A stretch of DNA of 63,334 nucleotides, the filler included, from Reticulomyxa filosa (Eukaryota; Protista; Foraminifera): assembly GCA_000512085.1 (NCBI GenBank). It is 13 parts of 13 records of this genome, joined end to end, with 100 filler letters (N's around TTAATTAATTAA, not from the genome) between each part and the next. Parts side by side here need not be neighbours in the genome. Positions count along the whole stretch, not along the records: positions 17,688 to 45,379 come from ASPP01024156.1; 12 more parts are not named here. The stretch is one strand, 5' to 3'. The notes under the pieces are model-generated. The model worked only from the letters and a program-made list of their open reading frames with translations. It had not been told where the DNA came from and did no database searches. The position numbers were made by a program, and so were the translations under genes. Below, one piece after another: positions 4,226 through 45,479 of the stretch. Every line of letters begins with the position of its first letter. Within the stretch, counting starts at the first letter, position 1.

Positions 4226-5438
4226 TTGGATTATGCTGAGGAATGCAATGTACCAGCATGTAAAAGGGTCTAGCCATCTGATTATACATTAATGCAGGCG
4301 CTATTGGACTCTTTGCGATGACTAGTACGACATCTAGTTTTAAATAAAGAGCCAACATCGTTATTAGAAACGGAAAGAGCACTCCAGATGGCTCAGAATA
4401 GATTTGAAGAAGAAAGTAGATTGAAAAGAACAGAAATTGGCAAGTAATCACGAAACTGAGATCAAGAATTCAAGGAAAAATTGGAGGTTAGAAAACATGG
4501 ATACATATGAAGTAATAGTAATATATGTAGTAAGTTACTGGATCATGGATTTAATAATTGAAATAATTCCGATAGCAAAACAAAGGAAAAAACACTCTGA
4601 ATTATGTAAAAGATATAACTAGAAAAAACGAAAAAAGGAGTTGTAATGACGAATGCTGGAAATGTGGAGGTCATAGTCATAAACAAAAGGATTGTATGAA
4701 AAACAAAGAAGAAAATGAAGTAAACGTCATTGAAGAACAAACTAATAATGATAGAAAACTTGATAGCTACGTACTACCTGTAGTTAGTTTAGATAATGCA
4801 CTAAAATCACCAGATGCAATGCAAATACAAGTTCAAACAAAAGAATTGTGTATAATACATGCATTGGCGGACAATGGAGCTTCAATTTGTGCTATGAAAG
4901 ATTCTATTGCGCAAAAATTTAAAAATCTCATAACAAAAGAAGTGTTTTACGAAAACTTGGCTATCAATTAAAACAAGAAACTAGTTCTTTTGAATACAAA
5001 GCAACTGATGAAATGGTTGATTATGATGACAACGAGAATTTAGAAAGTCTATTGTTAAATCAAAAAAATAGAAATAATGAAAATGACTCAAGGGAGCATC
5101 GAAACATAAGCAATGATGCACCACAAGAAGAAGAAAGAAATAAAAATATCCAAATGTTGGAAAACCAAATGATCAAACTACGGCAAAAATACTAGAAAAA
5201 TTGATCAAATGAAATCAAAGGATAGTAGCAAATAGTAGTTTTGATATTGGTAAGTTAAAAGATATTGGAAATGAAAATAAATCTTAAACCAAGACACAAA
5301 ACCAATAAAACAAAGGCCATATCCACTTAATATCAAACACCAAGAAGAAGTCAAAAAACAAGTAAAAGAACTCGAGATTGCTGGCATTATCAGGAAAAGC
5401 TCGTCTCAATTTGCAGCTCCTGTGGTATTAGTAAAAAA
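4226..5438 (+). mobile_element. Degenerate Ty3/Gypsy LTR retrotransposon gag-pol remnant
   Basis: Aspartic-protease-like HALADNGAS (~4858-4884). RT N-terminus ILNQDTKPIKQRPYPLNIKHQEEVKKQVKELEIAGIIRKSSSQFAAPVVLVK (5281-5438). Multiple stops/frameshifts between them. Confidence 0.8.
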
Positions 5439-8400
5439 NNNNNNNNNNNNNNNNNNNNNNNNNNNNNNNNNNNNNNNNNNNNTTAATTAATTAANNNNNN
5501 NNNNNNNNNNNNNNNNNNNNNNNNNNNNNNNNNNNNNNAGCCGAATTTTGTTTATGTCCATTACACTATTTTTTTATATGCAATGTTGCTATTTGTGCTT
5601 TTTTTGTCATCTTACATAATGATTCCAATTTTGAAACCCAGAAATTTCATTGTTATTTTTCATTTGTGGCAATTTTCAAAATGGAACTTTTTCCCTTTTT
5701 TTATTGGATAACGTATGGATTTACATGAAATAAATTGAAAAATGGTGATAATATTACAATAATCAGGTATTGTATCAAATTTTATATCAATTACTTTTTA
5801 AAAAGTAGCAAAGTGAATAATCTTTGATATTTACGAATATTTAAAGTTGTGGATCATTTTTGAACCTGTTTTTTGAAAATGAGTAACAGCTTTGAAATTA
5901 AAAAAATTTAACAAATTACTTTAATTGATTTAATAAAATAATTCAATAGTCATATGTTTGACGACTGAATAAATAAGGAAATATTTTCGAATTGAAAAAT
6001 TATGATGATTTGAAGAGTTCCTTAAAAAGGGTCTAGTTCCAGATTTTTTATTTTTTTATGTTGAATCATTTGTTTTAATCCTTGTTTTCAAACTTTACAA
6101 GGAGAAAATTTATATTCCCGGATTGCTGAAGAAATTTCATGTATGGAAGTAGCTGAGACAGTTTAAAGAGTATATTATTACGTTCTTTTTGATCAATGAA
6201 GATTTTTTCGATATTTGACATTATTTCATCAACAATCGAAAATTTATTTTATGTAATTTCAACAAAATAAAAATGATAACTCAATGTGACCTTATGTCTA
6301 CAGCTAAAAAAAATAAATGTCGCTAATGTAATGCTAAAGACCTTTCATCTTGAGATAGCAACTCTTTTTGCAACTGTTTTCTTTATTAACTACAAGAGGA
6401 TAGTTTTGAGAAGCGACAAGAAAAAAACATGGAAAAAAAATACAAAAACGAAGATAGAATGTCTATTTGATATTATATCATTTGACATTTGATAGCTTCA
6501 ATGACCAACTTGAAGCATGTGTTAAACTTAACGACAAAAAATTACAAGTTCGTTCATTTGTCGCACAGTATTCTCTCTCGCGCATACTTACGCACATACG
6601 CATAACATATATCCTAGAATTTTCATCGAGCATAATTACAACATCTGTAGAAGAAAGAACTTGTAAAAACTGGTCAGATCTATTTATTGAGTGGAAGCAG
6701 TGAATACGAATGAAAACGACACCAAATAATAAAGAAGAGTGCAGCCGCTTACTTTAAAGCGCATGCTTATGAAATAAGAACTATTTTTGTGAGTGCTATC
6801 TTAATTGATTTTGGAAATGGTTTGTTTCGCTTTGTTTGTTTTTTTTAATTGTGTGTTACTAGTTGTCTTCAAAAAAGGAATGAATGAAAATTTTCTTAAA
6901 GCGTTAGACAATTTGTCTTTGTTTCGCTCCATGAAATCTGGTGTATTAATTGTGTTTGCAATCTAATATTTGGTGTTTTTTTAACAATAAGTAAGTCATC
7001 TGATCTTTGGGATGGCACATCCTAAAATATCGTTGCACCATGCAAAGCATAATAAGCAAAATGGGACGTGAGCTGTTGCTTCACTCAGCAAACAAAAATT
7101 GGAGAACAATAAACAANNNNNNNNNNNNNNNNNNNNNNNNNNNNNNNNNNNNNNNNNNNNTTAATTAATTAANNNNNNNNNNNNNNNNNNNNNNNNNNNN
7201 NNNNNNNNNNNNNNNNTATATGTATATACTTTTTTATATTTGTTTATTTGTCCCCCTCCCCCCCCATCACGAAAACAAAAAGAGTTTGTCAGTGTTTACA
7301 GGGGAAAAAAGAAATCGAAATTGGAGATGGTATTTCAATTTAATAGTTATAAAACATATATTTTTTTGTCTATAAAAATTGTAAAATATAACTTTGTTTG
7401 TATATGTGCATATAGGTCCGGCGCACAACATGAATGGTATTTATTTTAAAAAGGGGTTGAATAATAGTGGAAGAAAAAAAAAGAAAATAAAACGATAAAA
7501 AGAAAAAGGAAGAAAAAAAGGGGATAGTGGAAAAAGAAAAAAAGTAAAAAAGATAAAAGAAAAAAAGAAAAAAGGTAAAAGAAAAAAGAAAATGAAAAAA
7601 AGGAAAAAGAAAAATTGAAAAATGGAAAAATTGAAAAATAGAAAAAATAAAAAAATAAAAAAAGTATTAGAAAAAAAACAAACATTTTTGATAAGGAAAA
7701 AATAATGAAAGAAAAAGAAAAATTATGTGATGATATCCCGCGCGGGATAGTTAAGTAAATTTTTTTTCTTTGTGCGTTTGTTAAAAAAAACAAATATAAA
7801 AATATACTTATAATATTATATAGAACAAGATCAGCCAATTGAAATGATCCGAAACAAGTATTTACTAAAATGAGTCATCTTTCTTTTTTCAATAATATCA
7901 AATTGATTTGTTATTTTTGTATATTTATAAATAGTTTTGTTCCAGTGAAAGCGTAGAGATTATGTACAATTTGTCCTCCAAACAAAGTCAGCATATATAC
8001 GTATCCAGTGCTGCATGTGCATTAGTTGAATCACCAAGATTTGAATATTAAATTGGAAGATTGACTGTCTTATCATCGGCCGCAGATTGTGTTATCACTT
8101 TTTATGAGTCACTTGAGCTCCTTCAATAATAGAGCTACCCAAATTGCTTCTTCTCAAAAATCGTATTGCTGCAGACAGTTAAGGTCAACCAACTTATTCG
8201 CAAGGACCAGCAAACAATTGAATCGGGATCATGTCTAGCAATGTGTCGGCTCAATGAATTGACTAATTGGTATACAAGAAGCAACTCACAATTAATCACC
8301 AATTGTATCATTGTTCAACTTTCGGTATTTTGGTCTGTCGCCCACAGCTCAAAAGTGGATTGTTTGTGCAAGTTCACAAATCAATATAATACATATAATC

Positions 8401-8641
8401 GATTTAAAATGACAAAGATTGACCAAACGCAAAGGAAAGGCAGCTTTATTTGAAGGTACGTACTACTTTATCATATTTTCAGTTGTNNNNNNNNNNNNNN
8501 NNNNNNNNNNNNNNNNNNNNNNNNNNNNNNTTAATTAATTAANNNNNNNNNNNNNNNNNNNNNNNNNNNNNNNNNNNNNNNNNNNNTGATAATCAATGAA
8601 TAAAAATGAGGTTGAAACCTGTTGTTTGTTTTGGTATTTAG

Positions 8642-9841
8642 CGTTCCAAACGTTTTTATGGAGGTATGCTATTCAATGAAGCACATCGACTATGTGACAA
8701 TCTTCCACCAGTGTGCTTTGGCCATTGGAAACATTGTGTCTGTGTTTTACGTATCATAGCCATGCGCTATTGCCTCAAACAGCGTGGTTAAAGTCATACA
8801 ACAATTGCGGCTGGAGCAAATTTTACACTGCGTGTGGAGATGATTTCACCAATAGAACTGATGCGTGTGAAATTGCCAACGATGAAGCGTATAGATATGT
8901 TCCAAGTTTAATTTAAAAACCTTTTCTTTTGGAATGTCTTTTGTTTGGGTGGCACGTCATAAACATCATATGTTATTGTTGTTCTCATTAGGCACATGGG
9001 ATCCTTACAAGTTACCACCAAAGAGAACCAAGGGCAAGAGATACACGATTTTTGTTTGCTTGCTTTTTTTTTTTTTTTTTTTTTTATTATTATTATTGTT
9101 GCCATATCAACTCCAACATCTTGGCAAATGAACAAAATAATAATAATAATAATAATAATATTGTGAAAGCATTTATGCACCAACCTGCCATAACAATTCG
9201 CTTGCTCCGGAATCGAGCATCTATGGCGAGTCATTCATCTATGAATACACGCCCTTTTTGAAATACTTGAAAGAGAAGTATCAAGTGGAAACCAATTACG
9301 TCTACAACCCTTGCTTGAATCACTGGACGCCTGAATACATGAACCGTCCTGATGTCTTGGCAGCCATTCATGCAAACACACACTACACAAGACCGTGGCC
9401 CAGTCATCCTCCAGGCTGGCAGTACGGCAGTGAGTTAGCGGACATTAACTTAATTTATCCTGAATTCTTCTCCAAGGCTCCACAATGGAAAATTACCATT
9501 GTCAGTGGTGATGCAGATGCTGCAGGTATTTACAAAAATACAAATGCATTGCTAAAACGTGTCGTCGTCTATTTCATGCTTTTTGTTTGTGTGTATTTGT
9601 ATGTTTAGTACCATTTATGGGCACACAACGATGGATCGAATGCTTGGGCCGTCCAGTTGTTGTGGATTGGACCAATTGGTGGATGGATCAGGACGTTGCT
9701 GGAAGTTACAAGATTTACGATGGTATCACATTTCAGACAGTAAAAGGTTGTGGTCACACTATCCCAACTTATTGCCCAGAGCAAGGGTTTTTATTTTTTG
9801 AGCAATACATTAATGGTACTTACAGTAGCCAAAGTAAATAA
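8642..9841 (+). CDS. Serine carboxypeptidase (family S10), 3' part, multi-exon
   Basis: WDPY, YNPC..YMNRPDVLAAIH, IVSGDADAA|VPFMGT (catalytic Asp, split by an intron ~9526-9607), TFQTVKGCGHTIP (catalytic His). Confidence 0.85.
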
Positions 9842-18872: not shown

Positions 18873-20890
18873 ATGGAGACAAAAGATGTTGAAACGAATG
18901 TTCTTAGTGGACGAAATCGCTTTAAAATGGTAAAAGTCCTTGCGAACACGTTGCAAGGGAGGATTTATTTGGCACAAGACAAAGCAAACAAAAACCAATG
19001 GGTAGTAATAAAAGAAACGTGGCAAGAATTGGTAAAACAAGGAAAGTCTCGGGACGGACATAAAGTACCAGAGAATTTTGAAAGAGAAAAGAGCATACAG
19101 TTGTATCTGTCAAACTTAGCAGACCAAAACCCAGGCAATGGATCAAAACACTTCCAAACATAACAAAACAAAACAAAGGGATGAAAAAAAAAAAAAATGT
19201 TAAAAAAAAAACAATAAAATAATAATAATAACAAAAGGTTATGTGAAATGTATTGAGAGTTGGGAAGATGAAAATTGTTATTATTTGGCAATGGAATACT
19301 GCGGGGCAGGGGAACTATTTGACTTTATTCGTGACAACCACACAAAAGGAGAGTTGAGTAAAATAGTAAAAAGTGTGTCCACACAACCGCAGGAATGCCA
19401 AAAAACTCCAAACGAATGGAGCTTATGTGTACAATCCATGTTCTGCCAATTGGTCGACACTGTTTCGTGGATGCATTCACACGGGGTTGTTCATTTGGAC
19501 TTAAGTCTTGAGAACACCATGCTTGCTTCTGTCGACAAAAATCAAGCCAATATTAAAATTATTGACTTTGGCGTTGCCCGCTTTTTTGAAGCCAAAGATA
19601 AGTTTAATGAAAAAGTCGGCAAGGTTGGTTACATGGCCCCAGAGGTATGTCGTTGCTATAAGTATAAAGTATTTGCATGTTTTTATTTTTATTTTTTTTT
19701 ATGTGTGTCTCTCATGTGTCGTCTCGTTTTTTTTTTTTTTTTCCTATTATCATCTTTCCCACACACACACCCCTTTTTTTTTTTCCGTGTACGTATATTT
19801 GACAACATCAGAACCACTTTTGGTGGTTTTTTTTCCACGTGTTCTGGATTTGTTCTTTATACTCCCCTTTTCCACCTTTTTCCAACATCTTTCGAAATGA
19901 ATTATACGTCATTTTGATAAAAGATTTTTTTATTATTTTTTTGTTTTTTAAAGGGAAAGTAGGAAAAAAAAAAAAAGCTTTGACTGATAGAAAAAAAAGC
20001 ATTGGCTTGGTACACTTTGACTTACAAAAAATAGGTGTATGCAAAAAAAGAATACTCACCAGAAAAAGCCGATATTTGGTGCTTGGGCGTGATGTTGTTT
20101 ATGATGTTAATTGGTGCACCTCCTTACGAATTTGCTAGCCCAACCAATCCAGCTTTTCGATTTATCATTTCCGGACGTCTACGTGATGTCTTGGCACATT
20201 GGCGAAGATTACCTTTGGTTTCAGCAGATGCTTTAAGTTATCTTTTTTTAATTATAAATTATTTTTTTTGGATAAAATGGGCGCTAAAGCGCGCATGCAT
20301 TTGTTCGCATTATTATGAATTGTTTTTACAAAAAAAAAAAAAATGTGTGTGTGAATGCGATAACCAACGAAACAAATGAAGATGTGATGGAGAGTATTTT
20401 CAAACCAGAAAGCGAAAGAATAACAATGAGCGAGCTAAGGCGACATAAATACGTGAATCTTAACAGTGAAAAAGAAAAGACGGAATCGAAAACAACACCA
20501 AGTTTATTGACGAAGAAAGAAGAAGAACAGACGAAATATTCATTATCAAAACCGAAAGTGACACAGCACTATACCAATGGAAATGCACAAACACTGACAA
20601 TTGCGAACGAAGTGATTCCAATTGTTACAACGAAGAAAGCAAAAGATATATCCCAATTGTTGCGATCTGCAGTTGGAGTCGAAAACATGCGTTCTTTGAT
20701 GACCACCATTGAAAAGAGTATCGAAGACACCAAAAAACAGTCCCAACTATCTTCTGCCACTAGCAATGAAAATCCAAAAGGAGAAGGCGTCGTTGACGAA
20801 GACAACAAAAACAATGACCAATGTCTAGATGAACTCAAGCAGTTGCTTCACGTCGTTATTAAAGCTCTTGAAATTAGCACTTCCGCGTAA
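18873..20890 (+). CDS. Ser/Thr protein kinase (CAMK-like, HLDLSLEN type), 4 exons
   Basis: VVIK, MEYCGAGELF, HLDLSLEN, IIDFG, GKVGYMAPE, ADIWCLGV. Introns 19135-19237 (GC-AG), ~19645-20034, ~20238-20381. Confidence 0.9.
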
Positions 20891-21489
20891 ACAAACAAAA
20901 AAAAGGGGGAGGGAACGAATCGGGAATGGGAGAAAAGAGAGGAGGAAAATAAACAACCAAAAAAAAAACACAAAAAGAGCAACAGCACCTTTTTGTTTGT
21001 TTTGTTTTGTTTTATTTTGTTCCTTCAAAGCAGGTTTGTTTAGTTGGTTTCATTGCTTTCCGCATTTGAAAGTTCGCCTGTGTTGTTTATAGGTGCACAA
21101 AATTTTATCATTATTATAATAACTATTTTTTTTTTATGTTTATTTTATTTTTTTTTAGTGTGTTCCATTGGTCTTGAACAAAAATAACTGTTTGGCCCAC
21201 TTTTGCAATTACAGTCTTTGATAAGTGTTTTTCGTAGTTCACTGATGGGGGTTCAAGGGTGTTTTTTGTTTTGTGCTTTTTTTTTTTGAAAAATAAAAAA
21301 TATTTTGTTTAAAAACTGAAAACAAGCTCGTGCGACCATATGTTGCTTTTCTCGCATTTCCATTCCATCTGAATAGCATTCTTCCCAACACACAACTCAA
21401 TGTTTTGCGCAAAAAATTCATATCACTTTATTCTCCTTGAACTTTTTTTTTTAAAAAGAAATCTAGTTGTAGTCCTACCACAAAAGCAA

Positions 21490-27122: not shown

Positions 27123-29105
27123 ATGGACCAGAACGTTGTTATCAGACAAGGACAGATCCACCGTTACCATAGACTGATAAAATCCGTCACTAAACCTTTA
27201 AACCTTTCTTTGGTTATTGGAATTGCTCTTACAGCAGCAATTATTTGTGGAATATTCCATTTGTATTTGGTAGCTTTTCTGATATTGGAAGGCAAGTCAT
27301 CAACGAGATTAATAAATACAATTAACTTAGATATACTTTATGCATATGTGGCGCTTTCATTTCTTTTCTTTTTTATTTGGTTATACGTGTATAAATGCAC
27401 ACATTTCTTTACCACATTATTATTGGCGATATTTTTGTCGGTCATTAATTTATGGTTCTCCTTACCCGTGGCTTTTGCATTGTGGTGCTTTTTTTTCAAT
27501 TATGTACAAAATAATTTTAATTTTCGTACATTTTTTTGGAAATTGTTTGATTGCATTGAAACGAAGAGCTTAACAGAGATCGAATTGCTGCTTTTTAAGT
27601 ACCAATTGAATAGTTATTTATTACTTATTTATCAATCCTATACCAATTCTAAGAATATCATATTAGAGCAGATCTCTCAAATTATTGAAAATTTTTTCCA
27701 GGTGGTCGAAAAAAATCCGACATTGGAAAAATTGTTGCAAGCAGATCAACTCGAAACTCAAATCTTTCCATGGCGTGTTTATTTAATCCATACACTATTT
27801 TTTGGTAACATCTTGGCTATTGTGCTGTGCTATTTTTATTTTTGCATTAGTATGTATTCTTTGCATTTTTCAACCAACGAAACGTATACCGAATGGTATC
27901 AACAGTACATATCCATTTTTGCTAAGATATGTACTGTATCCTATGGAGTGGCGCTAGTGCCAGCCATTTACCTCCGTAAGCACGTCCTTCCAATTCGCGG
28001 CGTAAAAATATCAGTATACGTGGACCATCGATTATTGGAGATACTTGAAAGTTAGATTGTGTGTCCAAAAAAAAGTGTTTAAAAAAAAAAAAAATTATTT
28101 ATTTATTTTTTTTTTTTTTTCACGACTCTCAATTTGATCAATACTCGAGAAGAAGAGAAAGGACAAAAATCTATTGCTCACAAAAATAATAGATTTTGAG
28201 GATAACAACATTGGCGAATTGCAGCTGAATGCCTTCATAGACAGTGCTTTTGCAAATAAAATGTTCCAAGAAGTTACAAGACAAGTAGCTTGCGAGCATG
28301 AGCTGTTACATTATGTAGATTTACATATTGCTCGTTTGATTTTGGAATACGCTCCCCTCACAGACAGCGAACTGTCTGAAAGGAAGGACAGCGCAAATTC
28401 CGAACCCAATCCTTTTGGCCAAAAGCAACAGCTGAGATGGGACTGGCACCGACACATTCGTGAGTTTGACACATGGCTTATTTTGACACTGATTTTTCTC
28501 GTTTTTGGTTATTTTTTGGGATCCGTTGCTTTGTTGCGAGGTGGGGATTGGCCATATAAAACTGCTGAATTTGCGACATGCATGTACGTGGAAAACAGTT
28601 GTCCGGGTTACGGCAGCGTGTATTTGTATACATTTGAGATTATGTCCAATCAGAGTATGTGTCATCACGTCATCTTTAATACCACCAGTGGTTGCTACGT
28701 CTATATTGAAGAATCCGATAGTGGTGATAGTGCAGACAAAATTCAGTATGTGTTTATATTAAGTACATACGTATACATATATATATATATGCATTCGCGT
28801 TTACTTGATTAAAATAATGATGATTGCTATGTCAAAAACTGGGACAAATCAATAGACAAAGATCAGGGGGCCAATATTACAGCAAAGACCAAAGGTACTA
28901 CGTTGGACAAAATATAACTTGGTACAGAAAAAATCAGACCTTAATAGAAAACCCCAACGTTTGTTATGATATGGAAACTCAAAATTTTAGTGCTAGTAAA
29001 AGAACAGATATCATAGTTTATCATTTCGCTGTACTTGCAATGATTTTTTTTTGTGGAGGTTGTTGCAAATCTTGTAATGTCCTTACTAAAAAAAAAAATA
29101 GTTGA
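27123..29105 (+). CDS. Orphan multi-pass membrane protein (about 3 exons), intact copy of a duplicated gene
   Basis: ORFs 27123, 28174 and 28824 can be joined; intron 28051-28192 keeps frame. The same exon order is seen in the paralog at 43483-44657. Confidence 0.6.
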
Positions 29106-32148: not shown

Positions 32149-35100
32149 ATGGATCATACATCAAATAAATTGAAAAAAGAAGATGAAAAGATAGAAATTG
32201 GGGAAACAAAACCTGGGATTAATTTGCAAGGTTATTGCACAAATGTTGATTGTTTAGCTGCAAAAGCAAAGCTTCCAGTATGGGTGAATCTTGGATTTGG
32301 TGACATTTCATTCAATTCAGACAAAACATCCTATCGCTGTCCAGATTGTGGACACTTCACTGTTACATCAATCATAAAGGCAATGATTTTTAATTCAGAA
32401 CATTCGATTTGTGCAAGTGATAATTCAATTCCTGTAAAGGATAATCATTATCAATGTTTTTATGTAATAAAACAAGGATTAGCATATGAGCTGAAAGCTA
32501 AAAAAATTAGACAGCATGCAACAAATTTGGAAGATTTAATTGATCGAAGTGAAAGTGCAATGATGAGTAATGAAATACTAAATTTAGTGGCCGAATTACA
32601 AAAATATTTGATAACAGTTGTAAAACCACCCAAAGTAAAAGATAAAGTAAGACTATTGGAAAAAATTCAATGTGATTACAGTGGTGATTTTAACCAGGTA
32701 TTTGATATTGGGAGATTTACAATTTTATGTGATAATCCTACTAAATTACAAACTGCAGTGGCTGTGATGAAAAAAGCAGAACAATTTAATTTAATCGTAT
32801 CTGAAGACAAAGATTTTTTTGAAAGACAATCAAAAACACATCACAGATTCCACAATATTAAATTGTATGTTCCAAAACATGATGTATATGTGGAAATGCA
32901 AGCAACTTTAAAAAATTTTACAACATTAGAAGGATACACCATAATTGAAAATCCAAAATTAAGTCATTTATTTTATGAACATATCAGAGCGTGGAAACCA
33001 AACAATTCAGAAGAGGAAGATTTAAAGCAAGCAGGTGATGAAACATTAACTAAGATCAACGATATTATCTGTGAATGGATTGATGACAAAGGAATACAAA
33101 AAATAGCAAATCGTTACAAATCACATTTGGATATTGGAATACTAAAACCGCCACAGCTATCAAAAAAAACAGAAATTGAAATTAATGCTAGTGTGTCATT
33201 GAAGATGGCACAATTTGTTTATGAACAACTTTGTAAGTTTACTCCAGAGAAAATGAAAGGAAAGGCAATTTATGTAATTTTATATGAATATTACAAAAAA
33301 TATCTTATTGGAGATAAAAATCCAGCAAGTTGTGCTGATTTTGCATCATTGTTACAAGAATCAAGAAAACAGGAAATTGAAGAAGATATAGCTATTTTAC
33401 ATGCACTTGAAACATATATCCCATTACAAGCCAATAATTATCCACATCTAGATGGTGACGATAATAAACATGATACATACGATTGTTATCAACGTGTGTT
33501 TCAGTTTTTGCAAGAAGAAAAAGAAGAAGAAGATGGAGAAAAAAAAAATGAACAAATACAGCAATTTCATAAAAAAAAATAATGATAATTCAAGGAAAAT
33601 CAGGATCAGGAAAAAGTATATTTTGTCGTCATTTAGATGAAATTTTCTGGAATAACTATTCGTCCAATTCAAAAAATCCAATACCGGTTTATATTTCATT
33701 TCCAAAGGTTTACAACAAAAACTCTGAAAAAGATATTATTTTTCATGCATTACAAGGTAGACATATCAGTAAAGAAATTATGGATGCCATCCGTGAAAAA
33801 GTATCTTTCGTGTTTATTATGGATGGGTTTGATGAAATATTTGACTTTTATCGTAAAAATGAAAAAGAGCAATATTTTGGTGATCGTTTTGCTTTAAATC
33901 AATGGAACGCACAAGTAATTGTTACTTGTAGAAGCAAAGTATTGAACGATGATGATATTAAAACTACTTTAATTGGTGCAAATCAAAATAATACATCAAT
34001 GATATATTTATGGCCATTTACAAAACAGCAAATGCACAATTACATTGAAAAATTTGCAATAATACAATCTAAAAATAAAAAAAAGGAAGACAACAGCGAT
34101 TGGACATCACAACGATACGAAGAAACGTTAAACAATTATCCAAATTTGCAAAAAATGGTGGAAGAACCGTTTCTTCTTCAGCTTATTTTAACTGTATTAC
34201 CATCATTAGTAAAACAATATGGTGTAGGGAGTAGAATTTCAAGGGCACAAGTATATGAAGTGTTCAATGATCAGTGGATTGATATTCACATACAAGATCT
34301 AATTTCCAAATTGGCAGAATTACGGATTCAAATGAACAATAAAAAAATAAAATCAGTATTGAAACAATATTGCCTTGATTTGGGATTTGATATGTTTATC
34401 CAAGGAAATCAAGTTGCAATTGAATCGGATATTCTACACGAAAACACTAGTGAAATATGGAATATGTTAGATCCAAAATTAGAAAAAGGGAAAAAGGCAT
34501 TATGGACGAAAAAACAGCAAATGAAACTGAAACAAAATCAAAAAGTGGTTGGAAAAAGTATTTTAATGGTGGTGGCATGACCAAATTCGTATTGAGAAGG
34601 ACAGAAGATAACAAACACCAAAACGTGGATGCAAATGTTGAAACTATAGCTGAAAAAACAAAAGATATTTGGGAAAAATATTTCTATTCTGACAGTATCT
34701 CCAAATACGTATTGAGAAGAACTGGTAACAACAAATATCAATTTTTGCATAAATCGTGTCAGGAATATTACGCAGCACAAAAAATTGTGCTTGACATCAT
34801 CTCGTGGAAACCAAATACCAATACTAATTTGAGCAATCAGGGATTTCACAGACAATTTGAAGCAGGCGTCCCTAAATTACTCATAAATCTCAAATTGCTA
34901 AATGAAGAACTAGGGATCATTAAATTCATTAGCGAACGGATCCATGACACTAATCCAGTATTTGCAAATTTAAAGTCTAGATTGTTTCGAATTATTGAAA
35001 CATCAAAAACAAATGAAAATGTTAACATTGCAGCAGCAAATGCAATCACAATACTTAATTTAGCAAATGTTAACATGCACTATCAAAATTGGAGTGACAT

Positions 35101-37276
35101 AAAAATTCCGCATGCAATCTTAGATAATGCATATCTTGAAGGAACCAACTTCAAAAATGCAAATTTAGATCATATTAGTTTTTATCAGGCTTTCTTAAAC
35201 AAAGTTAATTTTACAAACGCATCAATGAATGGAATTTACTTTGGAGAATATGCATATTTGAAAGGACACACAGGCCCGGCAATTGCAGTAGAATTTTCAC
35301 CAGATGGTACCAAAATTGTTTCATCTTCTGTTGATGATATTCGAATATGGGATATGTCATCTGGAGAGCAAATCCAAGTGTTAGATGCGCATCTCTTTTC
35401 ACCATTAGGAGTACATTTTTCACCAGATGGCTCAAAAATTGTATCGAGTTCAAGAGATAAAGCTATTCGAATATGGGATGCGTTATCAGGACAACAACTT
35501 GAATTATTAAATGGACATACTGGATCTGTAAATAGAGTACAATTTTCACCAGATGGCTCTAAAATTGTTTCATGTTCCGATGATACCAGTATTCGCATAT
35601 GGGACGTATTCTCTAAAAAACAACTTTTAGTATTAGAGGGACATTCCAGTGCTGTAAATAATGTGAAATTTTCACTCGATGGTTTAAGGATTTTATCATG
35701 TTCAAAAGATAAGACCATTCGATTGTGGGATACATTATCTGGGAAGCAAATTCAAGTATTGGAAGGACATTTGGAAAGTATAGAGGGGGTGCAATTTTCT
35801 CCAGATGAATCTAAAATTATTTCATGTTCGCAAGATCAAAGTATTCGAATATGGGATTTGTTGACCGGAAAACAGCTTCAATTATTCAAAGGGCATTCTG
35901 ATTATGTAATGGCAGCTTCATTTTCTTCAGATACTTCCAAAATTGTATCAGGTTCATTTGATAAGACAATTCGAATTTGGGACGTCTCTTCTGGAAATCA
36001 ACTTCAAGTATTGGAAGGTCATTCAGAGGCTGTAACTGCAGTGCAATTTTTTTCAAATGATTCTAAAATCTTGTCTTGTGCATTTGATAAAACTATTCGA
36101 ATATGGGATGTGGCATTAGGACGAAAGATTCAGTTAGCAGAAGGACATTTAGATAGTGTAAATAAAGTGCAATTTTCGCCAGATGGTTCGAAAATCATAT
36201 CGTGCTCAGAGGATAAAACGATCCGATTGTGGGATGCACTATCAGGAATACAACTTCAATTATTGGAAGGTCATTGCAACAGTGTACGTGGGGTGCAATT
36301 TTCATCAGATGGCTCTAAAATTCTATCCTATGCCTCAGATAAAACAATTCGAATATGGGATGTGTCATCTGGGATACAACTCCAGGTAATTGATGAGGAC
36401 AATGTAAATGGGGCTCAATTTTCATCTGACGGTACTAAAATTGCGATTTGTTCAGATAAAACGATTATTCAAATATGGGATTTATCATCAAAAAAACATA
36501 TCCAATCATTAAAAGGACATTCACTTGCTGTAATTGGAGTTCAGTTTTCTCCAGATGGCTCTAAAATTGCATCTTTTTCAAAAGATAATACGATTGGATT
36601 GTGGGACGTATTGTCTGGCAAACAAATGTATTCGCTGCAAGGGCATTCCAAACTTATAAATGGAATATATTTTTCACCAGATGGATCGAAAATTGTATCA
36701 TATTCGCATGATCATACAACTCGAGTGTGGAGTGCATTATCTGGGAAACAGCTTCACATATTTGAAGGAAGCAATGCTTTTATGGAGGCGAAATTTTCAC
36801 CTGATGGTCGTAAAATGGTATCATGCTCATGGAATGCAAGTGTCCGGCTATGGGACGTGTCATCGGGTAAAGAACTTCAGGTACTAGACAAACATTGGGA
36901 TGCGGCAATTGGGGTCGAGTTTTCGCCAGATGGCTCAAAAGTTGTTTCATATTCACTAGACAAAACTATCCGAATATGGGATGTAGCTTCAGGAGAACAA
37001 ATTCAGTCATTGGAAGGGCATACTGGAAAAATAAAGAGCATACAACTATCACCTGATGGTTCCAAAATTGTGTCATGTTCAGATGATAGAACTGTTCGAT
37101 TATGGGGTATTGATAATGAAACAACTGAGGATGAAGAGGTTGGTTTGATGAAATGTATTTGGCAAGGTGGTGTTCAAAGTTTTGGTTTATCTATGAAAGA
37201 TAGTATTTGGGGAAATACAAAAGGTCTAACAGCTCAGCAAAAATTGCTTGTAGAACAACGTGGTGGAAAATTTTAA
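32149..37276 (+). CDS. NLR-like STAND protein: Zn-binding domain + RelA/SpoT-like nucleotidyltransferase + NACHT + pentapeptide repeats + 15 WD40 repeats (two 1-nt frameshifts)
   Basis: Three consecutive ORFs join by adding one base at A9 (33571-33579) and in the AAAAAGGGAAAAA run (~34483-34495). Walker A GKSGSGKS, Walker B FIMDGFDE, VIVTCR, PFLL, FLHKS; pentapeptides ~35113-35243; WD40s 35258-37105. Confidence 0.85.
35258..37105 (+). repeat. Tandem WD40 repeat array, ~126-nt unit, 15 copies
   Basis: Recurring LxGH-x4-V-x-FSPDGxKIVSxSxDxTIRIWD. Confidence 0.95.
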
Positions 37277-38354: not shown

Positions 38355-41300
38355 ATGATTTGGTTCTTAACTTTTTGGTCAATCGTTGTTTGGTTGACCC
38401 GTATTTGCAGTTTTCCTTAAAAATTTTTACATTTTTGTTTTTTTTCTCAGTTTTTTTGAAAATTATTTTTACACCTTAAAAAAAAAAGTGAGTGAAACAT
38501 CAAATTTACCTGAATCTGAAATGAATGCATTATTATGTTTTTATAATGCAACTCATGGATTGGATTGGAATATTTCATCAAATGATGGATGTTCATTTGA
38601 AGGAATAACTTGTGATTCAGAAAATGGACAATCAACTATTATTAGAATTATTTTAATACGTCAAAATTTGTTTGGAAAAATACCCAGTTGTATATCAAAT
38701 TTTACTAATTTACAACAATTAGTTTTGGCAGAAAATTTTTTGAATGGTTCTATCCCTCCTGAAATTTGGTATATACGTCTTCATTAAAAAAAAAGTTTTT
38801 TTTAATATACCCTTATTATTACATTTTTTGTAAAAAATAGCCAACTTTCAAAGCTGGATTTATTAGTATTGGAATTTAATAAGTTTTTATTTATTTATTT
38901 CTCTCTCTCTTTTCATTGAAAAGTATTTTTTTTTATAAAAATAAATAAATAGACTGACAGGAACAATACCATTAGAAATTGGTAATTTAACATCTCTACA
39001 AGAATTACATTTAAAACGAAATAAGTTTTGACAAAAAATTATAAAATTATTTATTCTTATTTATATTATAATATATAAATTTTTAAAAAAGAATAAATGG
39101 AAGTATTCCAACAACAATCGGAAATCTAAAAAATTTAATAGTATTGGATTTGGCAATGAATCAGTTAAATTGATTAATAAGATATTTTCTTTTAAAAAAA
39201 TTATTATTATTATTATTTTTTTTTTTGTGGAGAATAGTTTGACAGGTATAATACCATCAGAAATTGGCAAATTAATTAATTTACAAGAGTTGTACATGGA
39301 TGAAATAAAGTTAAGATACATGTACTATGTATACATATATACATATTCGTAGTTTTTTTTGTTTTTTTCAATATTATTAGAACCTTGAGTGGTACAATTC
39401 CACCAGAAATTGGTAATTTGACCAATTTACGATATTTAATGTTGACAGAGACTCAGTTAAGTAATGATAAATGAATTATATAACATGTAAATTAGTTTGT
39501 TTTTTTATATGATAAAAGAATAAGTGGTAGTATACCTCCTGAAATTGGTAATTTAACGCAGTTGTTAATACTTGATTTATTCAAAAATCAGTTAAAAAAA
39601 ATATATAAATAAATACATATATGTACATATACGCATATATATATACTATTTATCTATTTTATATATTAATAAAAGATTGAATGGAAGTATTCCTAAAACA
39701 ATTGGAAATTTAATAAATCTAAGAAAATTACATTGGCATGCAAATGAGTTGAGTTGTTTTACTAATAATTAATTACTCATTATTATTATTGAATATTATA
39801 TAGATTAACTGGAAGTGTTCCTTCAGAAATTGGCCGTATGTCTGAATTAGATTCAATATTCTTATATAATAATCAGTTTAATTTTAATATTAAAAAAACA
39901 TTTAAGATAATACAATTTTTTATTGTTGTTAAAATAATTGAAAAGTTTAACTGGTCCTGTACCAAAAGAAATTGGAAATTTAACAAAATTAAAAGTATTA
40001 GATATAAGTTTGAATAAGTTAATTTTTAATTTTTTTTTGTAAATAAACAAATATAATATAATTGATTTTATGAAATTGATTGACTAGTTTGACCGGTACA
40101 CTACCAACAGAAATTGGAAATTTAACAAATTTAAGATTTTTAGCATTTGGTCCAAATAAGTTAAGTTTAATTACAATTTATAAAATATAAAATATAAAAT
40201 ATAAAATATAAAATATAAAATATAATATAAATATAAAATAAGTTTAAGTGGTACAATTCCACCAGAAATTGGAAATTTGATCAATATTCGATTTTTGGAT
40301 TTGAGTGAAAATTCGTTAATTTAAATAAATAAATATATGTATATTAATTATATCTTTTTTATTTGTTTATAGATTTTATGGTACAATACCAAATACAATT
40401 GGAAATTTAACTGATTTAATTTCTTTACTTTTAAATCAAAATAAATTAATTGGTACAATACCAGTAGAAATTGGAAATTGTTGGAATTTATCTATTTTGG
40501 AATTATCCCGAAATTGGTTAACTGGAACAATACCATCTGAAATTGGTAATTTACAAGAATTACAGTTTTTAATTTTAGAAAAAAATGAACTTAATGGTAC
40601 AATACCAAAAGAGATTGAAAATTTATGGTTTTTACAATATTTAATATTGGGTTATAATAAGTTATGAAAAGTATATAATATATAAATATACATAATATTT
40701 ACAACATTTGCATTTACATGTATAAATATATAGATTAACTGGTGAATTACCACAATTAGATATATTATCATTTTTAACACTTATTGATCTTAATAATAAT
40801 ATGTTAACTGGAACTCTTCCATTTCCTGATTCTTATAATTGGGATAATTTAATTATGCTTTCTTTAGAAAAAAATATGTTGAATGGAAATTTACCAAAAT
40901 TACCTAATAAAATGTATTCTACATTAATTATAACATTGCATATGAATAAATTTTCAGATCAAAATTTACATAATTGGTTAAATGAATTATTTCAAAAAGC
41001 ACCAGAATTACAAATATTATCTATTTATAATAATCCACATTTAACAGGATATCTTCCAAATAGTATATATAATACTAATATTGTAATGTTTCTTGCACAT
41101 GGATGTGAAATTAATGGAATATTACCATGGAATAATAGTCAAGGAAATATTCAATTTGCTACATTATTACAAAATCGTTTATCTGGTGCAATGCCAAATA
41201 ATTTAATTCAAACAACTGATGTAAAAAATATAAGTAATGTTACTTTTATTTATAATGATTCAATAATGATATTATCATTTAATATTAATACTAAATTAAA

Positions 41301-43227
41301 AAATGGATTATATTTATTAGGTAATAGATTTTCAGAAAGTAAACAATGGTATGAAATATTTAATAATAAAGAATTACCAACATATGTATCATATGATGAA
41401 AAAAATGCAAAAAATTTATATATTACAAAAGGAATTAATTTTATTGATATGATAATAACTGGATTTATTATAATAATTATATTATTTTTATTTTTACGAA
41501 AATTAAGAAGATATTTATTTATTAAACAATTTTGTGGTAATAATATAATATGTTTTAAAATTCAAAAACTTCCAAATCATATTGGATTTAAACAAATGAA
41601 AATAATATTAAAATGGTTTAATAATTTATTTACAGCAATAATTATTAGTTGTTTAATAATAATATATATATTAAATACAACATATTATAAAAAAGGATAT
41701 TTATTATCTCATTTTTCATTAGCATATTTTGAAAATCCATCATTAATTATTACAATATTATTAATAATTATTATTTTATTATCTAATATTATTATTTTAA
41801 TATATGCATTTAAATGGATAATTAATCCTCCATTTATTATAAATAATAATAATAATGATAATAATAATTCAATAAATTTATTTACTTGGCAAAAAGGAAT
41901 AACATTATTTTTATTATTTTTAGGATGGATTTTAATTGTTATAATTGTATTATTATATTTTGCATTTGAATCATTACCAAACAATAATACATTACACATA
42001 TCATCAAATTTAATTTATACAATTCAAGGAATAATGTCATTAGCATTATCTTTACATAATTCTTTAATAGCGCCAAATCTTTCAATTTATACAATTGAAT
42101 TTATATTTTATATTATAAATATTCAAAATCGTAAAATTATTCAAAAATTATATAGTTATGTAGCATTATTTTTACAAACATTGGTATGTATTATAATACC
42201 ACTTATTTTTGCATCATATTTTTATAATAATTGTGGTAGACATTGGATATATTATTGGGAGACTTGTTCTGGAAAAGATTCTAATGAAGCTATTGTTAGT
42301 TATCATTGGATTTTTTATGATATTGGTTTAGTTTGGTATATAGACAAAAATGTAGCAGTATTAAATTGGGGCGATTTATGTCAATATCAAAATTTTCAAT
42401 TTTAGTTATGTTATATATACATATATATAATAAATATACATATATATGTATACATAATATATCTTTCTTAGATTCATGTATTCGTGAAATTTTAGAAAAA
42501 TGGGGAAATATTATGGTAGCTAAAATGGCAATTAATATCTTTTTACCATGGATTCGTTTACCTAATATTCGTGCTTTTTTATTTCAATGTAAATCATTAC
42601 AATTCTTAGCTGGATCAAATGAATTAAATTTTGAAACTGTAGGATTATTTGTTAATGTAGAATTAGTAATATTATTAGGATTATTTTGTCCTTTAATTGT
42701 ACCATTATGTGCTATGGCAATTATATCTAATATCTTAAATTTTCAATATTTATTAAATATAAAATCTAAACATTTATCATCTTTACAAGAAAATCTTATT
42801 GAAAAAGATCATCATATTTATAAATTATCTGATGAAATACCTGCATTTCCAATATCAATATTAATTATTCCATTTTTATTTCAACAAATTATTTGGACAT
42901 TATCTGGTGCATTAAGTAATAATATTTATTCTCATTTAATCAAAAATATATTTGGTTATGCATTTATTATTATTGATATTTGTTTCATAATTATTGTTAT
43001 TATTGTAAAATATTTTTATGGAATACAAATACAACAATACAGTTTATTTTATTTATTATAAATAAATATATTTATATATACATATTTTTTTTGTTTATAT
43101 AAAATAAATCATAGAAACATCTGAAAATAAATTAACATTAAGTAGTATTGAACAAGATCAAATATTATATGATGAAACAGAATATCATCAAATGCAACCA
43201 ATGGAAACACTAAAAAAGGAACTTTAA
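38355..43227 (+). CDS. LRR ectodomain + ~10-TM membrane receptor, about 17 exons
   Basis: Signal-peptide exon 38355-38400 (MIWFLTFWSIVVWLT). LRRNT exon from 38489 (SEMNALLCFYNATHGLDW..C...GITC). Plant-type LRRs (LxGxIPxEIGNLxxLxxLxLxxN) in small exons 38841-40660. Large exon from 40734 with TM helices; last exon 43115-43227. A 1-nt phase mismatch remains at intron ~42405-42471. Confidence 0.85.
38953..40314 (+). repeat. Array of ten single-LRR exons (nine of 72 nt, one of 75 nt), all phase 2-2
   Basis: Exons 38953-39024, 39092-39163, 39238-39309, 39381-39455, 39519-39590, 39676-39747, 39804-39875, 39946-40017, 40088-40159, 40243-40314. Each is preceded by AG and followed by GTT. Confidence 0.92.
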
Positions 43228-43482: not shown

Positions 43483-44657
43483 CAATATCATATGATTGAG
43501 CAAAGCATTCCTGGCGAACGGAAAGAGAATGGGTAGGTAGACTCAGTTAAAACAACCTCTGTGATGGCGATAATTTTTAGTGGGACGTTTCATTCGTATT
43601 TGATAGCTTTTCTGATGATTAATGGCAAATCATTAGCGAGATCGATGGACACAATTGACTTATACATATTGTGCATATATATAATATTTTCATTTGTTTT
43701 CTTTTTTGTTTGGATATGTGATTTGAGCAAATACGAAAATATCTTGATACATATATCTTCAAAAGGATTTCCTTCCACTTCGAAGTATAAAAGCACCAGT
43801 ATACGTAGACAGTAGATTATTACACCTACTTGAAAGTTAATGTTCACATTAAAAAAAATAAAAAAAATAAAAAAATTGTTTCCAATTTAAGTCCCTCTAA
43901 GTTTGATTAATCCCTTTCACAGGATTGAGGGAAAAAAAAAATCCCTTATGTTGCACTCCAAATAATAGATTCTCAGACTTCTGATGTTGAGCTGCAACAT
44001 GATACCATCATAGCAAATGTTTTTGAAGTTGAAACGTACCGTAAATTAACCGAACGAGTAAATTGCTACAAAGCGTTGTTAAAGTACGTTGATTTAGATA
44101 CTGCCCCTTTGATTCTGGAGTATATTCCCCTCAATGTCTACGAAGCAGCACCCACACAAAAGGGCAAAATACGTTTCGAAACCAATTCTGTTAGCTACTT
44201 TGATAAATGTAAGAAATGGAAATTGGACCCTCACCATCGGAAACGCTGCGTTAGTTTGCTGATGTTGTTTTTCTTTGACTATTTTTTGGGATCTGTTGCG
44301 GTTTTGCACTTCAGGGATTGGCCGTATATCATTCCTGAAGAGATGAGATGCGTCAATGTGGAAAATAGTTGTATTAGAAACATATAAAGTTGGACAAAGT
44401 AAAATTTGGTAAATGGAAAATCAGACCTTAATAGAAAATCCTAATGTCTGTTTTAAAATGAAAATTGATAGCACCAACGATATTACAATCGTTAAAATAA
44501 GAGGTATCGCAGTTTATCATGTCCTTTCATTTATTGGAATTTTTATTTGTGTGCCTATCATCATACTGTGTTCACAAAAAAGAGGTAATGTTACAAATTA
44601 CGACTGCTGTGGTCGTAAAATGTCGTGCCTAGTGTACGCAGGCCAAACGACAACTTA
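43483..44657 (+). pseudogene. Internally deleted paralog of the 27123-29105 membrane-protein gene
   Basis: Paralog vs intact copy: YLIAFLMINGKS/YLVAFLILEGKS; LKYVDLDTAPLILEY/LHYVDLHIARLILEY; YFLGSVAVLHFRDWPY/YFLGSVALLRGGDWPY; NQTLIENPNVC identical. Frameshifts, stops and large deletions in the paralog. Confidence 0.75.
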
Positions 44658-45479
44658 ACGTTACTTGTTTGTCTTCAAATTGTAAATGGGGGCATATCTA
44701 AGAATAAATAAATAAACGTATATATTTTCTTTTGATGGAAAGTAAATACTGACAAAAGAATACGCTTATTGCATAAATTGTTGTTTATCTGTACATACAA
44801 TCAACAGATAAAAAATCCTCCTAAGATAAACTCATATCAGCACTCATATATTTGTTCATGAAAAATTAATATTTATTCAAATAATATCTATGTATCGTGG
44901 AAAACCAAAAATGTATTTGATTTTTAATAAAAGTGTAGAAAACCGTGAAAAAATCGTTCTTTTTTGAAAATTATAAGAAAAACGAATGGCTCGTATATTA
45001 AAAGATAAAAACATTACAAGCTTTATTTTGGTTTTTTTTTGTGTATTATGCCTGTAGGGCAAGTCCCTACTACAGATTACAAACTCTGAAAGAGTTGATA
45101 AGCCCCCAGTTAATTAAACTTTATGGTTTTTTTATGTTATAATTTAAATTAAATTTAATTTTTTTACTTTTATAAAAATAAAATTTCTGTTGAAAAAAGA
45201 ATTTAAATTTTCAAATACAGAAGATAAAAAAGAAAGTTGACACTTAAAATGCCACCTTATAGAGATGATTGTGTTTCTCCATGAAAAAACAACACTTAAT
45301 CAAAATTTTTTTTTATTTAAAAAAATATCTACGAATCGTGTAGTTTTTAAATATCATTTTGGTTTTTTATTAAGTCTTTNNNNNNNNNNNNNNNNNNNNN
45401 NNNNNNNNNNNNNNNNNNNNNNNTTAATTAATTAANNNNNNNNNNNNNNNNNNNNNNNNNNNNNNNNNNNNNNNNNNNN

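Follow-up and report, generated by a model that had tools for sequence, protein, structure and literature searches.

The stretch of Reticulomyxa filosa DNA analyzed here (63,334 nucleotides (nt) including filler; the window) contains, on contig ASPP01024156.1, an array of exons that each encode a single leucine-rich repeat (LRR). This array is the middle of one 17-exon gene on the plus strand, whose product would comprise, in order, a putative signal peptide, an LRRNT_2 cap, about 24 LRRs and a predicted 11-helix membrane domain. Taken jointly, our data make it probable that the array of this LRR-channel-type gene is inherited and colinear among paralogs, that it originated by duplication of units, that its exons are spliced constitutively into one long ectodomain, and that variety of the binding surface arises between paralogs. 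Such variety would come from divergence of the concave xxLxLxx residues and not from the combination of exons at one locus.

Anatomy of the LRR exon array

Array exons were located by requiring an AG before and a GT behind the exon, an open frame and an LxGxIP start, and the region 38400-41200 was read (positions are those of the window unless a locus is named). Ten consecutive single-LRR exons were found between 38953 and 40314, nine of 72 nt and one of 75 nt, which encode plant-type LRRs of 24 residues; next comes a 288-nt four-LRR exon (40373-40660). The scan thus re-found the series that an earlier reading of this DNA (the sequence-only reading) had described, and the eight-residue concave-face strings quoted there were all reproduced from the exons. 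The single-LRR exons, all on the plus strand, lie at 38953-39024 (E2), 39092-39163 (E3), 39238-39309 (E4), 39381-39455 (E5, the 75-nt exon), 39519-39590 (E6), 39676-39747 (E7), 39804-39875 (E8), 39946-40017 (E9), 40088-40159 (E10) and 40243-40314 (E11). E6 and E8 are class-A units, and E4 encodes an irregular repeat of the "M-class" that lacks the terminal Asn. Altogether 16 regular LRR units, with the repeat LxxLxLxxNxLxGxIPxxLxxL, were read from the exons. The ten array exons share on average 50% of their amino acids and 62% of their nucleotides.

The introns of the array are uniform. All 12 introns within 38883-40733 are GT..AG introns of phase 2, are 56-85 nt long, begin with GTT and interrupt the repeat at the same point, N-x/x-L, exactly as had been claimed. 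Their GC content is 5-20%, compared with 22-35% in the exons. The next intron upstream (38769-38840) begins with GTA and lies at a different point of the repeat. Position 38841, where the sequence-only reading had started the array, is a real exon boundary, but it opens a 42-nt exon with half an LRR that had been left unmentioned.

Every LRR exon is symmetric (phase 2-2, with a length that is a multiple of three), and therefore the reading frame survives when units are lost, gained or relocated. Array exons end in AA, CA, GA or TC, and hence skipping them cannot create a stop codon at the junctions. If any of the 12 array introns is retained, the frame shifts or runs into a stop codon. Such a pattern is far from what chance would produce, and the layout is also found in seven other loci.

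The array is colinear among paralogs

Seven paralog loci (L001-L007) were compared with the window gene. A word search with the long exon that follows the array matched R. filosa proteins only, at 52-72% identity, and the family comprises at least 11 paralogs in this species; an exact look-up of two ORFs of the window gave no match. In all seven loci, single LRRs occupy exons of 72 or 75 nt, in a few cases of 69 nt, the introns are of phase 2 and interrupt the repeat where those of the window gene do, and 33 of 40 paralog intron donors start with GTT. At the DNA level, alignments run colinearly through exons and introns: 39914-40988 aligns to L005 558-1667 (72% over 1131 nt), 39799-40998 to L006 539-1760 (70.5% over 1242 nt) and 39916-40998 to L004 9886-10990. 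Order is also kept among LRR units that are reciprocal best hits, with nine pairs and a tau of 1.0 in L005.

Individual exons can be followed from gene to gene. E4 groups with the units at L005:85, L004:9587, L006:322 and L002:30 in one clade of the unit tree. The 75-nt length of E5 recurs in L005 (291-365), twice in L001 (6463-6537 and 6940-7014) and in L004 (9216-9290), and E11 is 91% identical in nucleotides to the unit at L005:911. The counterpart of the four-LRR exon keeps the length of 288 nt in L001, L002, L005 and L006 and is shorter in L004 (285 nt) and L007 (216 nt).

A maximum likelihood tree of 51 LRR units from the eight membrane-proximal positions (tree A) recovered each of the eight positions as one clade across genes. 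Position labels change seven times on this tree, the minimum possible, compared with 36.0 changes for shuffled labels and 43 for gene labels; the figure is mildly circular, because similarity guided part of the position labelling for L001 and L002. A second tree (tree B) included all 85 LRR units.

Between positional counterparts, identity was 0.85 at framework residues, 0.52 at convex variable residues and 0.37 at concave residues; the corresponding values for non-counterparts were 0.81, 0.33 and 0.09. We report identity by residue class in place of the ratio of nonsynonymous to synonymous substitution rates (dN/dS), because the paralogs are only about 70-75% identical in nucleotides and this divergence, together with AT-biased codons, would saturate synonymous sites. 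The concave residues are the most variable class, yet clearly position-specific, and the residue classes show the pattern to be expected if the binding surface varies from gene to gene.

Gain, loss and fusion of single exons

Differences between the paralogs are rare whole-unit events, namely duplication with insertion, loss, and exon fusion through the loss of an intron. The clearest duplication involves E3 and E7, the only within-gene sister pair on tree B (Shimodaira-Hasegawa-like approximate likelihood ratio test (SH-aLRT) 97), which are also recovered by blastn (39048-39175 versus 39638-39759, 73.8% identity, E 2e-13). In L001 and L002, the two class-A units that flank E7 are direct neighbors, and E7 is therefore a single-exon duplication inserted elsewhere in the array, with E3 as its source or sister. 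The first 50 nt of the copy, the framework two-thirds of the exon, are about 88% identical, and the part encoding the concave strand has diverged almost completely (IVLDLAMN in E3 versus RKLHWHAN in E7). This single pair hints at selection or at relaxed constraint on the binding face.

Further events were seen in other loci. In L004 and L006, a block comprising the first part of the four-LRR exon and about 42 nt of the intron ahead of it was copied (79% identity), which made a 144-nt exon with two LRRs. L001 and L002 lack E10, a fused exon of 147 nt is present in L002, L007 has three repeats in its multi-LRR exon, and L003 has no intron ahead of the long exon.

Two other explanations for the look of the array were rejected. 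The introns of about 70 nt are not intronised 72-nt LRR units: no LRR relic was found in the introns of the window gene, and no intron scored above shuffles against any LRR exon. Nor did the array grow by recent tandem duplication, since its introns are no more alike than shuffles (mean z of intron-intron similarity 0.33) and the few high pairs are AT microsatellites. Long self-alignments of low identity, apart from that of E3 and E7, were judged to be an effect of periodic exons and AT-rich spacers. No spare LRR exons were found elsewhere in the ASPP01024156.1 piece.

Gene model and public annotation

The first exon (38355-38409, plus strand as all exons of the gene) is a putative one that comprises a start codon and a hydrophobic, signal-peptide-like segment, with a donor GTT at 38410; its junction with the second exon is tentative and was deduced from frame alone. 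A hydrophobic N-terminal open reading frame (ORF) upstream of the cap exon is kept in the window gene, L001 and L004. The first exon thus encodes a putative signal peptide, which would place the LRRs outside the cell. The second exon (38489-38768) encodes the LRRNT_2 cap (PF08263, E 3.9e-6, 27.5 bits; cut-off 20.7) and, behind it, two complete repeats (LRR1 and LRR2) and the first half of LRR3, and it is followed by a phase-2 GTA intron after ..PPEI. The site at which this exon ends is common to L001, L004 and the divergent paralog L009. The third exon (38841-38882) carries the second half of LRR3, which is split by this older intron, and has counterparts at L001 6196-6237 and L004 8948-8989.

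Downstream of the ten single-LRR exons, the four-LRR exon was recognized by Pfam as LRR_1 (E 1.3e-9). The long exon (40734-42402) encodes about seven irregular LRRs and then the transmembrane helices (TM) TM0-TM5 with a Cys-rich extracellular hairpin. It is followed by an open exon for TM6-TM10 (42472-43041), 75-80% identical to paralogs, and by the last exon (43115-43227), which was placed by tblastn of residues 542-576 of the paralog protein P0008 and encodes a cytoplasmic tail and a TAA stop. The intron between these two exons (43042-43114) starts with GTT. All 16 introns of the gene keep GT..AG and 15 of them start with GTT, including three outside the array (38410, 42405 and 43042). The preference for GTT over GTR starts could be a donor flavor of the species or a trace of intron origin.

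The last exon ends at the same base as the public gene model, which spans 39464-43227 (L010 17316-21079) and predicts 989 amino acids. That model starts inside the intron after E5 and consequently lacks the first seven exons, among them five LRR exons and those for the putative signal peptide and the cap. A gene of the same kind in L001 is split into two public models of 213 and 932 amino acids. The paralog P0003 is named "CLAVATA1 precursor" in one NCBI record, yet it has no kinase, and the name is misleading. In Pfam scans of the window exons and of the paralogs (P0001, P0008 and P0011 in the kinase scan) no kinase family and no ROC-COR domain was matched. For these scans the window exons were searched individually, with 40735-42402 and 42474-43058 taken apart because of a stop, and the annotated paralog proteins represent the spliced product. 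The public annotation can thus be corrected in two respects, the seven missing exons and the name given to the paralog.

The membrane domain is predicted to have an OSCA/TMEM63-type fold

The membrane domain had no Pfam match even at E up to 1 (RSN1_7TM, PHM7_cyt, RSN1_TM, Anoctamin PF04547 and TMC PF07810 included), and sequence searches of the PDB with profiles of 10 and 38 sequences returned noise only. A large profile search with this domain collected 201 proteins (E up to 1e-3). Some belong to R. filosa, Bolivina argentea or Nonionella stella, and the others were marine and other metagenome sequences. Long matches carry N-terminal LRRs, and the combination of LRRs and membrane domain recurs in B. 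argentea, N. stella and one TARA scaffold. The distant foraminiferal relatives from this search made a structural model possible: with ten close paralogs alone, AlphaFold2 (AF2) gave an unusable model (predicted local distance difference test (pLDDT) 37), and with 38 sequences it gave eleven long helices and a Cys-rich hairpin at pLDDT 82.2 and a predicted template modeling score (pTM) of 0.82.

The model was compared with 48,161 chains using VIA-align. The top match was TMEM63A (Z 20.4, 392 aligned residues, root-mean-square deviation 5.3), with model residue 6 pairing with TMEM63A residue 36 onward. OSCA1.2 (19.0), OSCA2.3, TMC-1 (17.2) and TMC-2 (16.9), both from C. elegans, TMEM63B and OSCA3.1 came next, and then TMEM16F (16.0), TMEM16K, afTMEM16, TMEM16A and Ist2, with TMEM16 proteins ranging from Z 16.0 to 10.5. 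The next unrelated helical fold dropped to Z 7.4. In Foldseek, the top 50 matches all belonged to the TMEM16/OSCA/TMC superfamily, at marginal E values. An Atlas shape search returned CSC1/TMEM63 clusters (TM score 0.56), and an Atlas feature search gave anoctamin at 0.89, a lead only. The model thus points to the OSCA/TMEM63/TMC/TMEM16 (TCS superfamily) fold with 11 helices including TM0. A conserved W-E-T-C motif in the domain presumably resembles a TMC signature.

In OSCA1.2, 11 helices are present and the N-terminus lies outside (PMC6235563), a topology that suits an N-terminal ectodomain. The loop between TM2 and TM3 spans P0008 residues 148-169 in the model, about 22 residues. The protein may function as a ligand- or tether-sensing channel or scramblase.

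Origin of the periodic introns and alternatives to an inherited, constitutive array

Two relatives encode LRRs without the periodic introns. The divergent R. filosa paralog L009 has the cap intron at the same site and all further LRRs in one exon. In L008 (TARA_SAMEA6035044 scaffold_2155, 4361-8779; a marine scaffold of 28-30% GC) the homolog is intronless: a single ORF of 1472 residues opens with a signal-peptide-like segment, continues with about 24 very regular LRRs (..LxGTIPDSIGNL..) and includes the same membrane domain. The periodic introns are thus a trait of one R. filosa subfamily. In the ancestor of this subfamily, one LRR unit carrying a phase-2 intron would have multiplied, exon and intron together, and the layout would have been inherited since, which would leave at least seven paralogs with the same exons in the same order and with introns that can still be aligned. 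Multiplication of an exon-intron unit is the economical account of the array and most likely the correct one.

Several points weigh against the overall reading. Apart from the circularity mentioned for tree A, colinearity is less clear in the N-terminal half of the array (E2-E7) than in its membrane-proximal half. Repeated intron gain competes with unit duplication as the origin of the array introns, and L009 and L008 encode LRRs but do not have these introns. That splicing is constitutive is assumed, most likely correctly. Membership of the channel superfamily is suggested by a predicted fold, with neither a Pfam nor a PDB sequence match beside it. Finally, the window gene contains a one-base frame break; this copy may have been broken recently, or the assembly may be wrong at that point.

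This break lies at 42399-42405 on the plus strand, where the T run before the donor is one T longer than in paralogs (alignment with L005, L006 and L001). The extra T puts a TAG (42403-42405) in frame and breaks the frame match to the next exon. Splicing from a different donor, GTCAAT at 42378, would avoid the break but was rejected, since it would remove eight conserved residues including a conserved Cys. If the extra T is real, this copy would be a pseudogene, its protein would terminate at the TAG at 42403 or at a TAA that splicing creates, its array would be a decaying remnant, and the visibility of the T and the resulting stop against three paralogs speaks for this. We nevertheless consider a pseudogene rather unlikely. 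The break is the sole lesion in 17 exons, GT..AG is retained by all 16 introns, both exons behind the break are open, with 75-80% identity to paralogs, and the site is a homopolymer in a region of 19% GC. Assembly errors are common at homopolymers in low-GC regions. We therefore favor a homopolymer error or a very recent break.

For the introns, the alternative to unit duplication is that they were inserted independently at the same sequence (N-x/Leu codon) of a pre-existing intronless LRR array. L009, which keeps the cap intron alone, and the single 1472-codon ORF of L008 fit such an origin, as does the lack of mutual similarity among the introns of the window gene. In addition, the introns begin (G TTA A..) in a way similar to the exons that follow them (N TTR A..). 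However, repeated insertion would need at least ten gains at exactly one phase and position, block duplications carrying intron flanks were seen directly, and GTT also opens the non-periodic introns at 38410, 42405 and 43042, where it may be a local donor flavor. We judge independent insertion improbable and retain duplication of an exon-intron unit as the preferred origin.

It is very unlikely that the single-LRR exons are cassettes which are skipped or combined in splicing so that one locus yields many ectodomains with different binding surfaces: the in-frame geometry with its stop-free junctions, the alternative splicing of 72-nt phase-2 LRR exons reported in brown-algal ROCO genes (PMC11378527) and the whole-unit losses between paralogs, which show that shortened solenoids are tolerated, would allow it, but splice sites are uniformly canonical GT..AG, the position-specific identity of exons kept across paralogs argues for a role of its own for each repeat, a reservoir of spare exons and LRR relics in introns were not found, and variety is already supplied by at least 11 paralogs. 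The sequence-only reading had proposed that any exon can be skipped, duplicated or swapped in frame to give a variable surface from one locus. Its first half is supported by the cassette geometry and by the duplication, insertion and loss of exons among paralogs in evolution. The second half is not supported, given the colinear order, the position clades, the introns free of relics and the lack of spare exons, and combinatorial splicing from one locus is not suggested by our data. Colinear order across paralogs was half of what that reading had named as speaking against it, and colinear order is what the comparison of exon number and order returned; on the exon-level tree, likewise, each of the eight membrane-proximal positions formed one clade, with 7 label changes versus 36.0 for shuffled labels. 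We conclude that the exons of the inherited array are old, individually conserved and colinear, and that diversity seems to sit in the at least 11 paralogs.

Comparison with known LRR genes and channels

Exons with one LRR each are known from two other settings. In brown-algal ROCO "type I" arrays (Ectocarpus, Saccharina), one 24-residue LRR is encoded per 72-nt exon, with phase-2 introns and at least ten exons (PMC3341825, PMC11378527). The vertebrate glycoprotein-hormone receptor/LGR genes, as far as they are quoted in PMC11378527, have successive one-LRR exons with all introns in phase 2. The R. filosa gene shares with the ROCO genes the 72-nt exon per LRR, the phase-2 introns and an array of ten exons, but its introns lie two codons earlier in the repeat (N-x/L-x-G rather than just before G), its protein has no ROC-COR, and it belongs to Rhizaria, not Stramenopila. 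The signs of ongoing shuffling in ROCO genes, namely near-identical exons, scrambled order and LRR relics in introns, contrast with the window gene, where the exons are 62% identical in nucleotides, order is kept, relics are absent and a single exon duplication was found. With the hormone receptors the gene has in common one-LRR exons, phase-2 introns and an LRR ectodomain joined to a multi-pass membrane domain; theirs is a seven-helix G-protein-coupled receptor, whereas an 11-helix OSCA/TMEM63 fold is predicted here.

The likeness to plant receptor kinases is restricted to the ectodomain. As in ERECTA/CLAVATA1-type kinases, there is an LRRNT_2 cap and there are 24-residue plant-type LRRs with the GxIP motif, but the R. 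filosa protein has neither a kinase domain nor a single-pass anchor. The likeness to ERECTA and ROCO genes that had been drawn from the sequence alone thus holds for the 72-nt phase-2 exon per LRR, as in ROCO, and ends at the C-terminus, where an 11-helix OSCA/TMEM63 fold is predicted in place of a kinase or ROC-COR.

Compared with OSCA/TMEM63/CSC1 proteins, the membrane domain is alike in its predicted 11-helix fold with TM0 and in an N-terminus that would lie outside, as in OSCA1.2. It differs in that no profile of these families matches, that the TM2-TM3 loop is much shorter than the cytosolic IL2 domain of more than 150 residues (PMC6235563), that about 550 residues of LRR ectodomain precede TM0 and that a Cys-rich hairpin stands between TM5 and TM6. 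With TMEM16/anoctamin proteins there is no PF04547 match, and the fold match is weaker than that to TMEM63/OSCA (Z 16.0-10.5). For TMC there is no PF07810 match, and fold similarity reaches Z 17.2 (TMC-1) and 16.9 (TMC-2).

Among the papers covered by a literature search, none links an LRR ectodomain to an OSCA/TMEM63-type domain. The new part would hence be a plant-type LRR ectodomain fused to a domain of predicted OSCA/TMEM63 fold in Foraminifera; the exon pattern is already known from gonadotropin-receptor genes and from the ROCO genes of brown algae. The one-LRR exon pattern is thereby extended to a third independent eukaryotic lineage, Rhizaria, beside the brown-algal ROCO and the vertebrate hormone-receptor genes, and positional orthology among the paralogs allows individual exon gains and losses to be traced.

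OSCA/TMEM63 and TMC proteins are force sensors, and their coupling to outside structures is a live question. We tentatively propose, as a possibility with the odds against it, a Foraminifera-specific family of receptor-channels in which a modular LRR solenoid, built in R. filosa from one-repeat exons that can be added, lost or skipped, is covalently coupled to a predicted OSCA/TMEM63/TMC-type pore, such that binding of a ligand, particle or tether outside would gate ion flux or lipid scrambling. If true, the TCS superfamily would include a member that is gated by a ligand or tether and equipped with an evolvable, possibly splice-variable sensor. A natural fusion to a putative ligand-binding solenoid, expanded in organisms with adhesive, sensing reticulopodia, would provide a testable model of tether or ligand gating.

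Neighboring genes

Just upstream, at 32149-37276 on the plus strand, lies an NLR-like gene with an N-terminal domain (an ORF of 477 amino acids), a NACHT P-loop ORF, pentapeptide-like repeats and 14 WD40 repeats. This family is very large in R. filosa, with 72 relatives at E up to 1e-10, many of which carry PF05729 NACHT and some PF04607 RelA_SpoT. Two copies of a multi-exon membrane-protein gene flank the region (27123-29105 and 43561-44658, plus strand), and their ORF translations share stretches around ..LILEY.PL.., ..YFLGSVA.L.., ..VENSC.. and ..NQTLIENPNVC... Further upstream, a multi-exon protein kinase gene (18873-20900, plus strand) has its catalytic motifs spread over at least three ORF pieces and a clear GTATGT donor near 19645.

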